A DNA stretch of 64,000 nt from the IMG/VR virus record IMGVR_UViG_3300035661_000001, positions 387,957-451,956 of that record; one strand, 5' to 3'. Position 1 is the stretch's first letter. Each line of letters starts with the position of its first letter. Shown piece by piece: positions 23,650 through 63,746 of this stretch. The translations under genes and the position numbers were made by a program. The notes beneath the pieces were generated by a model. It saw only the letters and a program-made list of their open reading frames with translations. It was not told the origin of the DNA and did not search any database.

Positions 23650-23854
23650 ACACCTGACCCATCCCAGCCTTTTCCCGCCACCCCCATTGCCCATCAGTTG
23701 TTCCATCCCATCCCAAACAAAGGTCATACAATAGATTTATTAATCTATTCTTTCCGTTGACACTGTTTATTCTTTTCTTTTCCCATCCTATCAATGATTT
23801 TCTTTTCTATCTTCTTTTAGTACAGCCCATCCGTCAAACATCCCAAATCATACC

Positions 23855-24019
23855 ATGATCACCATCCTCATCACGTTTTTCGGTGTTACCACCACGGAAA
23901 CGGTGCCCGATCAGCCCATCCAGCGCCGTCGTGCTGCTGATCTGCTGATGAAGGTAGCTCTCGCGGACGGCAAAGGCGCCGGGCACCGCGACGGATGCGA
24001 TCCCATCACGGTCGGTTGA
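23855..24019 (+). CDS. small hypothetical protein
   Basis: 54 aa ORF MITILITFFG..., first gene of the GC-rich block. Confidence 0.45.
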   Translation: MITILITFFGVTTTETVPDQPIQRRRAADLLMKVALADGKGAGHRDGCDPITVG

Positions 24020-24139
24020 GCTATCATGGCGCGACTCCTCGATAGGATGCTGGGTTACTGGAGCAAGCTGGATGACTGGAGCACTAAGGTAGAGACCTAC
24101 CTGCTCTACACCCATCGCAAGTTCTGATCGGAGAAAGTC

Positions 24140-24493
24140 ATGTCAATCATCGCTATGACCCTGGTCATCATCGCAATCTTCATCGCAATCTTCATCGGGC
24201 ACAAGGCGGGTCTCACGATCTATGCCATCGGCACCGCGGTTCTGTGGAGCCTCGTCGGGCAGCCCCTCGCCTACCTCCTTACCGCGGTTCTGTGGAGCCT
24301 CGTCGGGCAGCCCCTCGCCTACCTCTTTCTCCCCCACGTTCTCCCCATCGTTGCCCTCTCTCTGCTGGTCGCCGTCGCGGCGCTCATGGTTTCACGATGG
24401 TGGGGGCTCCTGCTCTTCATCGTCGGAAACATTGCCATCACGACACTTTTCGGTCTCGGTCTCGGTCTCGGTCTCGGTCTCGGTCTCCTGTAA
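24140..24493 (+). CDS. membrane protein with internal duplications
   Basis: Hydrophobic 117 aa; GGAG RBS; 48-bp-period tandem duplication 24233-24325 and (GGTCTC)6 at 24452-24487. Confidence 0.7.
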   Translation: MSIIAMTLVIIAIFIAIFIGHKAGLTIYAIGTAVLWSLVGQPLAYLLTAVLWSLVGQPLAYLFLPHVLPIVALSLLVAVAALMVSRWWGLLLFIVGNIAITTLFGLGLGLGLGLGLL

Positions 24494-24714
24494 ATGGTTC
24501 CAGTCGAGACCCATCCTCTTACGTAGTGGGTGAATGTCATGCTCGCAATCTACAACGCTCGCGCCTTCCTTGTCGCGAACCTCACAACCTCACGTGGTTG
24601 GGACGGCTGGAATCCTCGGGGCGGACCCTGATAATCCACATCGATTACACCATCAACGGAAAGCGGGCGACCTTCACCGACTACCGCTTCGAGCTGGTCA
24701 GCAAGTAGTGTACC

Positions 24715-24755
24715 AAGGGCGGAGCCTCCGGGCTGCCGCCCTTTCACTTTTCTTT
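24715..24755 (+). terminator. intrinsic terminator
   Basis: GGGCGGAGCC-TCCG-GGCTGCCGCCC + T-rich tail; near-identical to 25673-25702. Confidence 0.8.
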
Positions 24756-24763
24756 CCCGGTAG

Positions 24764-24855
24764 TGGCACGCCGATTGCAATATACACTTCCTGTGCCAAT
24801 CAAGATAGCATCATAGGTTATGGCATTAGGTTTGCATTAAGCAAGTTGCTTGCCA
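24764..24855. promoter_or_regulatory. two head-to-head sigma-54 palindromes
   Basis: TGGCACGCCGATTGCA-ata-TACACTTCCTGTGCCA (24764-24798) and TGGCATTAGGTTTGCA-tta-AGCAAGTTGCTTGCCA (24821-24855). Confidence 0.8.
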
Positions 24856-24913
24856 TGCTCTGCTGGTCCCCAGCGAGCTCGATCCCATCCTCCCCTAGTG
24901 TTCTGCTATTAGC

Positions 24914-25195
24914 ATGAACACCCTGCAAAACATCCTCTCGACCCTCGCCGCTCTTCACACCGCGGATGCCGCAGTGACCGCGCTCCCCGTTGATGCTTCC
25001 GACGGTGAGGAAGATTCTCTCATGGCGGAATTCACCGCCGCAGAAACTGCGCTGTGGCACATGGCTCCGGCGTGGTTCAAAGATGCCGCGAGCGTCGGCG
25101 GGCTTCATGGCACGGGTCTTGCCGGCGATCCGGTCTTCTGGGCTCTAGATGACGTGGCGGAGCTTTGCGCCATATTGGCAATCGCCGCGCTCTAG
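24914..25195 (+). CDS. hypothetical protein (similar N-terminus to 25409..25666)
   Basis: MNTLQNILSTLAAL vs MSYLVKLNQVLATLAAV. Confidence 0.65.
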   Translation: MNTLQNILSTLAALHTADAAVTALPVDASDGEEDSLMAEFTAAETALWHMAPAWFKDAASVGGLHGTGLAGDPVFWALDDVAELCAILAIAAL

Positions 25196-60755: not shown

Positions 60756-60856
60756 GACGAGCAGTGGCGGAATGGAAGACGCTAAGGATTTTTTGTCCGA
60801 GCTGAGTCTGCTCCATGAGGCAGATAGGCATGAAGGTTCGAGTCCTTCCCTCGTCA
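60756..60856 (+). tRNA. degenerate class II (Leu/Ser-like) tRNA
   Basis: GACGAG/CTCGTC, TGGCGGAATGGAAGACGC D-arm, GAAGG-TTCGAGT-CCTTC; enlarged variable region. Confidence 0.45.
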
Positions 60857-61045
60857 CCGTTGGCAGGTACTATGTACCTGGAACAACATCATGTGTTGTG
60901 TTTCTAGAACATTATGCAAGGTGTAGCCAAGAAGATGGTCAGCGTTCCCTGACCCATCTCGTGAAGCAAGGCAATCCTAGATCATTGCAGCTTCTAAGAA
61001 ATTGTTTGACATAACCATTCTTCAGGCTCTGGTTGTGTCTATATT

Positions 61046-61126
61046 GCCATCGTTGAGCAGGTAGTGGGCTCACCGCGCTGTAAACGCGGCTTTTCGGACT
61101 TGAAGGTGCAATTCCTTCCGGTGGCA
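61046..61126 (+). tRNA. tRNA-Tyr(GTA)
   Basis: GCCATCG/CGGTGGC, CCGCG-CTGTAAA-CGCGG, GAAGG-TGCAATT-CCTTC. Confidence 0.75.
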
Positions 61127-61713
61127 CCCATCAGCCAGGCGCCGTGCCTTCTGGCTCCACCGTAACAGGTGTGAGTCTGGCTGATGTCTTTTTTACATCC
61201 GAGCAGAACGTATATGAAAAGAGACCTTCTTGGCAGGTTTATATCAGATAACAAATGCGATTCGATCGCAGTATCGATTGCCCACGGTACTTATGTTGTT
61301 GGTGAACATGCCCATCAATGTGATAAATGCGGCAAAATTTGGAGACATTCTGATCGAGCGTTTAACAGTCGTATACTTCATATATGCGATTGTGGTCATG
61401 AACAATTCGACAGTGGGTTGTCTCCAAATTTCAATCCAAATTTTTTGTGCATACATCTGTGGCGCGTCGTGCGTCAACGTAACTGCATGGCAAGAGACAA
61501 CTAGACATGACGAAACAGTTTTACAATCAACCTTGGTTTTGGTTTCTGATTGTCACGATGCTGCTGGCAGTGCTGGCGGAATTTTTGGGTCATCGTGAAA
61601 TTATTCCGTGGTTGGGCGGATTCGTGGCTATCATGGCTTTCGGTTACGCTTTTCGTTATGTGATTGATAACTCGTAAAAATAGTTTCAGTCGCACCCGAA
61701 GAGTTAAAATTAC

Positions 61714-61825
61714 GCGAGAATAGTTCAGACGGCAGAACGTCAGCGCTACGGCGCTGAAAACGGTCAAAGGCTAATAAGCAGGTGCGAAGTGCTAACGCCG
61801 GGTTCGATTCCCCCTTCTCGTTCCA
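61714..61825 (+). tRNA. tRNA-like element with insertion (Arg-ACG-like)
   Basis: GCGAGAA/TTCTCGT + TCCA, GTTC/GAAC D-stem, CAGCG-CTACGG-CGCTG, about 35 extra nt before GGTTCGATTCC. Confidence 0.45.
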
Positions 61826-62438
61826 ATAAGAAATTCAGGAGTACAAAATGCAGATCGAAACTCTGATCAGTCGTCTACAAGACTTGCAGAAGTCCCATTC
61901 CGGAGCTACCGTCTACGGAATGGAGTATGCCTATGGGACTACCCGTATGTATCCAATCAGTGATGCGATCAGTGGTGAAGGCATTACGACCTGCACTTCA
62001 ATGCCGTCCAGCGGTCCCAAAGTGATCCTGGATATCAATCATCAGTAAACGTTACCCATCGGTGATAACCATGGACCAGAATCGAGCAGTTGCTCTCAAA
62101 GCTATGGTATCTGATCTTACGCAAGAGATTGCGATAGGTCGAAAAAGATTGACCGCGCTTGGTCAATCCTTGATTGCCGCAAGCAATGAACTCGCTTGTG
62201 AAAAGGAAAAAGATATGCCTGACGATTTGACCAACACTCGCCCTGCTCGATGCTTCGATTGGCTCCGTGCCCATCTTGGCTTTTTCGATAAGATCGCGCC
62301 GGATGCTCCTGGGTACAGTCACATGACACAGGAAACGTGGGAGAAGCTCCTCGGTGATGGCATCGATGTTTACGTAGTGAACTCTTCATCTTTCATGAAG
62401 AAAGATATCCCCGTGAGTTATCTCCCTCCGGAAAACAA

Positions 62439-62777
62439 ATGACCACAGAACGATCTTTCGTACTACACGCGTGGTTCTCCAAGAAACACGAAGTGTTTGT
62501 TGGATCAGTGGAGATGGACACGCCTGACGGAAACGTGGTTCGTGTCACTGCAATAGCGCCCGCTATTGAGGCAGCTTATCCTTGGGATGATGCTGCGTAT
62601 ATGGGCGTTGTCTTAGAGAGCACCAGCCGTAACAGATCTTTCAACAGCGGATTCAATCCTCCTCCAACACCTCCTCACAGGAAGGTTTTGAAGCTGGGGG
62701 AAATCTGTTCAACTTGTGAAGCCGAATACAAGGAACGAATTCTATTCAGAGAGTCGTACACCGGCTGTCTTTGTTAA
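62439..62777 (+). CDS. hypothetical protein with C-terminal CxxC...CxC
   Basis: 112 aa, ATGA overlap. Confidence 0.6.
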   Translation: MTTERSFVLHAWFSKKHEVFVGSVEMDTPDGNVVRVTAIAPAIEAAYPWDDAAYMGVVLESTSRNRSFNSGFNPPPTPPHRKVLKLGEICSTCEAEYKERILFRESYTGCLC

Positions 62778-62783
62778 CAAGGT

Positions 62784-63236
62784 GTGATTATGAATTCACA
62801 TGAAATTCTAGATAGTCGGAACAAGCATAAACCATTGTTCCGGACAGATCCTGAAACCTGGGAAGGTAAAGGAACTGTTCACCAGATCAAATGGGATGAC
62901 GGACACATTACTAGTCTGTACGATTACGGTAATGGCGAATCTACCCATCTCAATGTGGTCTCCGTAGAATATTACGAGAGAGAGTTTTTGCCTACTTGGA
63001 TCCCAGAAAACAAGTGGCGGCAAGCAAATCCCTTGTATCGTGACCGGCTTTTGAAAGGTCGGTCCTGTCCAAAAGAATTTAGCTGGTATGATGCTATGCT
63101 GATTCTGAAAAAGGTAGGAGTTCCTTGGAACTTTATCCAACGTATCAGCCGCGGATACTACTACGTCGTTGACGAAATCTCTCGCCTCCAATCGGAAGGT
63201 GAAGCAATCATTCGGTCTATCTCGATCAATCGTTAA
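62784..63236 (+). CDS. hypothetical protein
   Basis: 150 aa ORF. Confidence 0.6.
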   Translation: MIMNSHEILDSRNKHKPLFRTDPETWEGKGTVHQIKWDDGHITSLYDYGNGESTHLNVVSVEYYEREFLPTWIPENKWRQANPLYRDRLLKGRSCPKEFSWYDAMLILKKVGVPWNFIQRISRGYYYVVDEISRLQSEGEAIIRSISINR

Positions 63237-63746
63237 TAAGATAACGCTAGTGGGTGGCGTTCGTCTGAAAAAAACGAGGACCGAATCCCATCAATCGTAC
63301 CGGACCCTAAAAGCAAGGTACAACATCTGGATCGCTCTCCGCGATCTCGATCGTTTCCCGACGATGCCGGATGTAAATGGGACACCCGTCCCGCGCGATA
63401 ACTATAGACGAGCACGGAGGAGATTCCCATCCCATTCCTTCGTGTCTTGGGGAGAGAGAACACGATCAACGTAATAGCATGAGAGACCCGTGCATCGCCG
63501 AAAGGTGAGCGACTCTCATCCCTCTACGGTGTTGGCATCTTTCCAATATGGCAAAATTGAGGAACACCCGGCTCTGGTATAGGGCAATGCCTGTTTCTCC
63601 TTCGTGCTCGTTCCCGCCACAATTACTTCTAGAGTGGTGAGTATACAGCGTCAAGTCTTATGTGGAGGGTCCGGGAGCGATGCTCTTTAATCCGCCAACC
63701 ACAATAAAAATGTGCGGTGTCCGTCAGAATAAAATCTGAATGAGGA

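Follow-up and report, generated by a model that had tools for sequence, protein, structure and literature searches.

The window analysed here, the last 64 kb (64,000 nucleotides) of a 451,956-bp phage contig from IMG/VR (IMGVR_UViG_3300035661_000001), contains a GC-rich block of small genes through which the hexamer CCCATC is written about once every 100 nt, exactly and on one strand. The word is evenly spaced, is imposed on protein-coding sequence, begins at a fixed distance past sigma-54-type promoters and is conserved in related phages. The block has a GC content of 55–63%, next to 29–40% in the first 23.4 kb of the window and about 32% in the rest of the genome, and it makes up about 7–9% of the genome. 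Sense-strand polarity, a fixed post-promoter position, word-free promoter cassettes and a preference for intergenic spacers tie CCCATC to transcription units, and not to a global DNA polarity.

An exact one-strand word with even coverage

The original prediction, made by eye from the letters, had put about 220 copies on the plus strand. We counted 231 on that strand and 6 on the minus strand of the window, 224 of the former from 23658 onwards, and all 24 start positions that had been listed for 30.7–33.3 kb are exact. Dinucleotide-preserving shuffles yield 35.7 ± 6 copies on both strands together and none of 100 reached the observed 237; on the plus strand alone, the excess is about 15-fold over a first-order Markov expectation for that strand. 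There is no polarity switch across the 40 kb, and in the AT-rich flank at 1–18 kb the word is missing from both strands instead of being reversed. The scattered same-strand copies that had been noticed from about 18.4 kb number seven and lie in AT-rich genes, one of them (at 23068) antisense within a minus-strand protease gene. Density also declines towards 64 kb as described, from a measured peak of 16–18 copies per 2 kb at 28–42 kb to 3–5 per 2 kb at 58–64 kb.

Near-matches do not share in this excess. All 18 one-mismatch variants were counted in 23.6–50 kb, and none rises beyond about 1.3 times the number expected, with most falling short of that number. No hexamer is commoner in this region than CCCATC, to which 187 of 238 CCCA tetramers belong; its flanks carry no conservation, save that position −1 is rarely C. 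The exactness of the word points to one sequence-specific reader.

Gaps between successive copies in 27–48 kb (n = 155; mean, 134 nt; coefficient of variation, 0.61; mode, 80–120 nt) depart strongly from an exponential distribution (Kolmogorov–Smirnov p = 1.8e-19), with 4 gaps below 60 nt where 55.8 are expected. The regular spacing claimed earlier is borne out to the extent that short gaps are missing; neither a strict period nor 10.5-bp phasing was detected, and the array is therefore over-dispersed and not periodic. From a rigid array bound to DNA, 10.5-bp phasing would be expected. Across about 1 kb without a called gene (38.1–39.2 kb) copies still follow one another at 80–130 nt, so the minimum distance between them is not just a coding cost. 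The spacing looks like the outcome of coverage selection, in which no long stretch stays free of sites and a second site close by brings no gain.

The word is not a by-product of the proteins. Within called genes it falls in all three codon frames (53, 32 and 14 copies), and 75 of 174 copies (43%, as against 57% within genes) are intergenic in a sequence of which only 30% is non-coding. In 46 genes, 83 copies were observed, compared with 7.4 after shuffling codon order and 35.9 after shuffling synonymous codons with the protein held fixed. Pro-Ile is the most over-represented dipeptide (55 versus 12.9 expected; 4.2-fold), 49 of the 55 being written CCC-ATC, and almost half of the CAT histidine codons fall within the word. 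Protein coding is not its cause, as the original prediction had argued from the mixture of frames and spacers; the word shapes the proteins instead. The accompanying statement that the most codon-biased genes are poor in it was correct for 26794–28125 and 47313–47825 and fails for 46064–46633, a gene that is as codon-biased as these motif-poor genes and yet carries five copies.

Of the short intergenic spacers, 30 out of 40 contain CCCATC, which in 13 of those 30 abuts a stop codon. Spacer copies typically lie 17–30 nt ahead of the next start and do not coincide with the GGAG/GAGG ribosome-binding sites; besides its enrichment between cistrons, the word is spread through genes. The earlier claim that it occurs inside tRNA-like arms was wrong: no bona fide tRNA contains it. 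Two copies adjoin tRNAs, and one overlaps the 3′ end of a tRNA called by ARAGORN only.

Promoter phasing and conservation in relatives

The block carries a repeated cassette in which an intrinsic-terminator hairpin with its T run is followed, 5–10 nt on, by TGGCAC-N5-TTGCA. The −24/−12 consensus of sigma-54 promoters is TGGCAC-N5-TTGCW, in which GG and GC do not vary and are separated by 10 bp. A loose pattern of this type has 16 matches against 0.26 expected, 11 of which are on the plus strand of the block (24764–57449). A TGCCA 14 nt past TTGCA is conserved as well, and this TTGCA-N14-TGCCA extension lies outside the classical sigma-54 consensus. Sigma-54-type promoters driving a phage gene block would be unusual in themselves and would imply an enhancer-binding activator.

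The word is phased to these cassettes. For 6 of the 7 cassettes between 24 and 48.5 kb of the window, the first CCCATC comes 28–50 nt past the −12 element (p = 2e-4), and all 7 lack the word in the 143 nt upstream (p = 1e-5). In a related phage, referred to here as the first relative, the first copy falls in the same 28–50-nt interval in all 9 cassettes (p = 8e-9), and these 9 are likewise free of the word for 143 nt upstream (p = 1e-4).

The first relative was assembled independently at 447,633 and 447,666 bp; two near-equal assemblies with different start points indicate a circular map. It shows the same boundary, behind a release factor of about 70% identity, and its block (about 31.6 kb; 46–55% GC) is internal and fades into AT-rich genes with recognisable domains. 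Here CCCATC occurs 140 times in the sense and twice in the reverse orientation, at about 5 per kb, with 3 gaps below 60 nt where 35 are expected. In a third phage, 465,767 bp long, sense copies number 109 and reverse copies 2, at about 8 per kb. The block DNA of both relatives has almost no nucleotide similarity to that of the window, and the flanking AT-rich genes have about 70% DNA identity. Because the block DNA has diverged and yet the word is common to all three phages, CCCATC has been retained while genes turned over. The sole second copies of the relatives' blocks are 100% identical to them.

Individual orthologues are few. A P-loop kinase-like gene of the window has four copies of the word and its orthologue in the first relative (41% identical) has none; in the alignment, the residues that CCCATC encodes fall at two indels and two variable positions. 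The largest gene of the block, encoding 443 amino acids, is among the few block genes with an orthologue in the third phage (28% identity).

Two sister lineages share the AT-to-GC boundary; the one-strand elements that they carry past sigma-54-type promoters and ahead of genes or tRNAs are other, longer ones. In one of them (L011, on its reverse strand, and L006 at 19900–21083) about 9 copies of the 14-mer CCATCGATCGACAA are found on a single strand within 4.5 kb, often paired and mainly in leaders or non-coding DNA, and several of them lie no more than about 300 nt downstream of a sigma-54-type promoter. In the other (L031, 3900–9100) CCCAGCGACTAAGTTTTGTC is found 17 times on one strand and never on the opposite strand in 7 kb, upstream of ribosome-binding sites and flanking tRNA genes, often as tandem pairs 87–88 nt apart; it starts with CCCAGC, one base from CCCATC. 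Set side by side, the lineage words read CCCATC, CCATCGATCGACAA, CCCAGCGAC... Sigma-54-type promoters are present in relatives and sister lineages alike (L130, L132, L251, L031 and L011). Scans of a viral collection for triple CCCATC and for the leader cassette returned mostly chance hits among the matches listed, together with at least three relative-like loci (L030, L031 and L216).

Candidate functions of CCCATC

The core of the original prediction, an oriented cis-signal under selection for both polarity and spacing, holds. Of the four functions it had suggested, one at the RNA level or linked to transcription fits best, given the promoter phasing, the word-free cassettes and the spacer preference. 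Our tentative view, held with somewhat less than even confidence, is that CCCATC is a reiterated, transcription-unit-linked cis-element of a special block, with antitermination or RNA shielding as its most likely role. The block is divided into units by intrinsic terminators that have sigma-54-type promoters directly behind them, and the sense strand would be where the word is read, as CCCAUC in nascent RNA or on the exposed non-template strand of the elongation complex. Its reader would be a sequence-specific factor, of phage or host, that loads soon after initiation and is re-supplied about every 100 nt. Transcription and message might in this way be kept intact over many tiny, loosely coupled genes, whether by processive antitermination, by shielding from Rho or by protecting the mRNA from RNases. 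Coverage selection would lead to over-dispersed spacing and would place the word first in untranslated spacers and second in tolerant codons (Pro-Ile and x-His-x). The even coverage suggests that a site is needed for each 100–200 nt or so of product, which suits a re-loaded or RNA-coating factor better than a switch with one site per unit. We infer both a protective effect and a reader whose target is RNA or the non-template strand.

A wider proposal, to which we would give almost even weight, is that CCCATC belongs to a previously unknown tagging system of a megaphage clade, in which a hexamer runs through a whole class of transcription units and a dedicated factor services the RNAs or elongation complexes over their full length. 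The service might consist in protection, in antitermination or in destruction at a set time, and different tags could have evolved in the sister lineages. If so, the system would be to whole transcripts what Chi is as a self marker, and would add to the largest phages a layer of gene control that is new. Selection for the word would have been strong enough to alter hundreds of codons, and the word would mark a whole block of fast-evolving, probably host-takeover genes. The reader, once found, would be a sequence-specific RNA binder or strand-specific nucleic-acid binder with a very short, portable tag, which would give it value as a tool, and could show how a phage of 32% GC runs a GC-rich, sigma-54-type-driven programme in its host. 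An exact, over-dispersed, one-strand k-mer would also be a computable signature with which to find such blocks, and their lineage-specific words, in metagenomes.

Several observations weigh against our tentative view of a transcription-linked element. None of the blocks examined contains a credible transcription unit on the opposite strand, so transcript strand and DNA strand are inseparable; the opposite-strand gene calls within the blocks have no homology, and one of them is replaced by another gene caller. No reader protein was identified, nearly all block genes being ORFans by Pfam and PHROGs. With 9, 5 and 2.5 copies per kb in different phages and regions, the density does not imply a footprint of fixed size. 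In the third phage, about 11 kb of dense CCCATC is without a sigma-54-type promoter match. Ahead of terminators the word is only weakly depleted in the window (p = 0.18), more distinctly so in the first relative (p = 0.003), and the predicted unpaired probability of CCCAUC (0.117) is not raised over that of composition-matched controls (0.148–0.169). In known antitermination systems, moreover, an operon has one or two sites instead of one every 100 nt. Lambda nut, rrn boxA and RfaH ops are leader elements that act on nascent RNA or the non-template strand and shield long operons from termination; CCCATC is like them in lying on the sense strand of the leader, just past the promoter. They are at least 12 nt long, come one or two per operon and have N, Q, NusB/E or a NusG paralogue as their reader, whereas CCCATC is a 6-mer renewed about every 100 nt through coding DNA for which no N, Q or NusG-like reader was found.

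The closest rival, which we nevertheless consider unlikely, is a stoperator-like roadblock: a phage protein would bind duplex CCCATC in one orientation, block RNA polymerase and silence the block, as a shut-off at a temporal switch or in a carrier state. The L5-type stoperators of Cluster A mycobacteriophages are asymmetric, lie at promoters and in short intergenic spaces, are inactive when reversed and have an orientation that is strikingly correlated with the direction of transcription (PMC9283540). CCCATC, too, is a reiterated asymmetric phage site at promoters and in short spacers whose orientation follows transcription; the copies 28–50 nt past promoters and in three-quarters of the spacers, all in a single orientation, would suit a roadblock, and at 14 nt and about 20 nt the sister-lineage elements have the size of operators. 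Stoperators, however, are 13-mers or thereabouts that number more than twenty, or a few tens, per genome, are intergenic and are served by a dedicated monomeric repressor (gp71-type), whereas the exact 6-mer CCCATC occurs about 230 times in 40 kb, over half of these copies being intragenic, and is evenly spaced and limited to one block. Six base pairs are very short for a DNA-binding repressor, and a roadblock needs neither the 57% of copies that are intragenic nor their even spacing. There is also no helical phasing of the kind that would hint at cooperative DNA-bound arrays, and no repressor candidate was found among the block genes. The longer elements of the sister lineages resemble another mycobacteriophage motif family, the SAS/ESAS of Cluster K, which are reiterated, asymmetric, intergenic and upstream of many genes, and whose role is not known. 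SAS is a 13-mer at some gene starts, and CCCATC is a hexamer that runs through genes.

Less likely again are decay tags, with CCCAUC cut by a sequence-specific endoribonuclease of the T4 RegB or MazF type for scheduled destruction of messages or release of cistrons. RegB cuts GGAG in early mRNAs, a short sense-strand word between cistrons that is tied to a temporal gene class, and CCCATC is exact, restricted to the sense strand and enriched between cistrons just upstream of ribosome-binding sites. GGAG, however, is at the same time the ribosome-binding site and is not evenly spread in coding sequence, whereas CCCATC is separate from that site and continues through genes. A single cut per gene would be enough, yet long genes have a site about every 100 nt, and selection for faster decay is unlikely to be strong enough to alter proteins. 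Predicted accessibility of the word is not elevated, and decay tags do not predict promoter phasing.

We regard as improbable a Chi-like or translocase-orienting signal, in which 5′-GATGGG-3′ on the minus strand would protect or orient first-entering or waiting DNA, as in T5-style first-step transfer. Sites on first-entering DNA and Chi- or KOPS-like signals were two of the four functions originally suggested, and a short, exact, strongly co-oriented word with a G-rich complement does recall Chi and KOPS, words of extreme polarity that are read by a translocating machine. The small share of the genome that the block occupies and the five-copy cluster at its left boundary would also be in keeping with this, and coverage selection could even out the spacing here too. 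Both versions need an end near 23.6 kb, however, and no physical end was shown; in the first relative, the block is internal on a circular map. Neither predicts the fixed post-promoter position, the word-free cassettes or the spacer preference, and one copy per 110 bp across 40 kb is far above what end protection needs. Chi and KOPS, moreover, are replichore-skewed over whole host chromosomes, spaced by kilobases and indifferent to promoters, whereas CCCATC is limited to 7–9% of a phage genome, has a spacing of about 100 nt and is promoter-phased.

Strand-specific DNA chemistry (T5-like nicks, a modification motif or a restriction-linked orientation bias), which takes in the last of the four functions originally suggested, modification or nick sites, is very improbable. 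Asymmetric exact hexamers are typical of restriction–modification enzymes and nickases, and the word is on one strand. In T7, about 36 asymmetric hexamer sites for EcoP15I all lie on one strand, a bias read as restriction evasion; unlike these, CCCATC has six reverse copies, is enriched, is evenly spaced and is linked to promoters. Restriction evasion would cover the polarity but not the 20-fold enrichment, and six reverse copies still make head-to-head pairs. A single strand with about 230 nicks over 40 kb seems unworkable, and the promoter phasing is left unexplained. Least probable of all is recognition of 5′-CCCATC-3′ by a primase on the lagging-strand template, with forks moving rightwards from the 23.5-kb boundary (compare 5′-GGGTC-3′ in T7): the word is exclusive to one strand, and its purine-start primer complement and possible cryptic 3′ C recall known phage primase sites, but this offers no reason for confinement to so small a part of the genome, for promoter phasing or for an intergenic preference, and a spacing of about 100 nt is far below that of phage Okazaki fragments.

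Stoperators, nut/boxA/ops sites, Chi/KOPS and RegB targets each match one or two properties of CCCATC and fail others. We judge the element to be new, with its mechanism inferred. We found no description of an exact hexamer that recurs about every 100 nt over a 30–40-kb block, is promoter-phased and imposed on proteins and outlasts gene turnover, and a search of the full-text literature for CCCATC or GATGGG in phages found nothing relevant.

Genes of the block and its surroundings

From the start of the block to the contig end, the genes are small (40–200 amino acids) and on the plus strand. Recognisable domains are confined to one AAA_33 kinase-like protein in the window and, in the first relative (L130, 11221–13389), a DEAD/Helicase_C/HA2 (DEAH-like) helicase of 722 amino acids whose gene contains 11 copies of CCCATC. 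A candidate Q-like antiterminator at 31957–32487 rests on a PHROG match that is not credible (E = 0.0096). Within 24235–24490, the first sizeable gene of the block (24140–24493) has a direct repeat some 50 nt long, together with a GGTCTC run near its 3′ end.

Two codon dialects meet in the window: 1–23400 favours AAA, AGA, TTA and TAT, and 23900–48500 favours AAG, CGC, CTC and TAC. The tRNAs of the phage in the window (Lys-UUU, Arg-UCU, Leu-CAA and Tyr) decode mostly the AT-rich codon set. These two dialects and the tRNA set suggest a GC-rich host and expression of the block before phage tRNAs are available. The block is probably tuned to the translation system of that host, with the remaining genome dependent on phage tRNAs, and it probably constitutes an early or host-takeover gene class.

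Table 1. Positions in the window of the CCCATC array, promoter cassettes and selected genes
Feature	Position	Strand	Remarks
GIY-YIG/NUMOD3 homing endonuclease	540-1289		Conserved AT-rich part
Sparse leading CCCATC	18422-23073	+	7 copies on plus, 0 on minus; in AT-rich genes
Class-I release factor, full length	19238-20326		PCRF and RF-1 domains, GGQ motif
AT-rich non-coding boundary	23400-23850	.	Followed by GC jump to 55-63%
Main CCCATC array	23658-63431	+	224 exact copies
Tandem sigma-54-type promoters directly after hairpin	24764-24836	+	CCCATC 48 nt past the second
Sigma-54-type promoter cassette	25721-25736	+	CCCATC 49 nt downstream
Terminator and sigma-54-type promoter	26357-26386; 26403-26418	+	Upstream of 443-aa gene
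443-aa gene, largest in block	26794-28125	+	GC3 0.82, strongest codon score, 3 CCCATC
Terminator and tandem sigma-54-type promoters	30119-30144; 30167, 30208 (to 30223)	+	CCCATC 32 nt downstream
AAA_33 P-loop kinase-like gene	30775-31218	+	4 CCCATC
Terminator and sigma-54-type promoter	33626-33691	+	CCCATC 28 nt downstream; reverse copy 33613 just upstream
Sigma-54-type promoter	38366-38381	+	CCCATC 50 nt downstream; reverse copy 38269 upstream
Terminator and sigma-54-type promoter	44758-44791; 44813 (to 44828)	+	CCCATC 28 nt downstream
170-aa gene	47313-47825	+	GC3 0.86; within longest CCCATC-free gap (755 nt)
Promoter, ~100-nt unit, terminator, promoter	57302; 57387-57417; 57434 (to 57449)	+	CCCATC 28 nt past 57434
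tRNA cluster: Lys-UUU, Leu-CAA, Arg-UCU, doubtful Tyr	58115-63989	+	Low-density end of array

At the left edge of the block, five close-set copies of the word (23658, 23690, 23707, 23782 and 23826) precede the first GC-rich gene, and the copy at 23658 is itself preceded by a GTGCCAA element, like those of the promoter cassettes. The first 23.4 kb consist of tightly packed ordinary phage genes, which also encode a GMP reductase and a dNMP phosphatase. The homing endonuclease of this part recurs in the third phage (L251, 4259–5059) at a position other than that in the window phage. The nearest named matches of the release factor are annotated as RF2 (prfB), and its identity to bacterial prfB is about 40%; tblastn searches of cultured phages with this protein returned matches at about 40% identity only, and megablast and blastn searches of the window against a phage collection, for likeness to cultured phages, gave no match. 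The presence of an RF2 gene raised the possibility of stop-codon recoding, which was rejected: reading TAG, TGA or TAA as sense brings no strand-specific gain in the length of open reading frames, and the genetic code in the window is standard.

Directly upstream of the block (18387–22308) is a tandem family of at least six zinc-ribbon paralogues with an N-terminal CxxC, a second Cys/His pair and a C-terminal LKKKLKTLLLFI-like tail; a tail resembling it is visible in the sequence of L006, from a sister lineage. Just left of the block, the plus strand is G-poor and C-rich (GC skew of −0.37 to −0.52 in 20000–23400), and comparable skew lies left of the block in L031 (−0.6 to −0.7 in 1–3000) and in L251 (5000–8000). 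This skew is a property of the DNA strand rather than of the coding strand, because it covers plus-strand genes and a trypsin-like protease gene on the minus strand of the AT-rich part alike.

The unit of about 100 nt at 57302–57430 has no gene call of its own, no CCCATC and a fold z-score of −3.6, and is overlapped only by minus-strand open reading frames and the tail of a 55-amino-acid plus-strand frame; it is a candidate small RNA. Its terminator stem holds the reverse copy at 57402. A small RNA that shows the anti-word in a hairpin loop (57328–57428) was considered and dropped, as in the predicted fold the terminator stem takes up the GGG of GATGGG. Half of the six reverse copies, those at 33613, 38269 and 57402, lie 30–100 nt upstream of terminator–promoter junctions, an anecdote that could reflect chance or an end-of-unit signal.

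A second assembly of the window phage, of 349 kb, breaks earlier, within about 0.8 kb of the place where the contig ends. The contig end lies in a tRNA region that closes, at its extreme (63747–64000), on a perfect 127-bp tandem duplication with tRNA-Arg(UCU). As 127 is a frequent maximum k-mer length of assemblers, the duplication may be an assembly artefact or may represent a genuine tRNA array.

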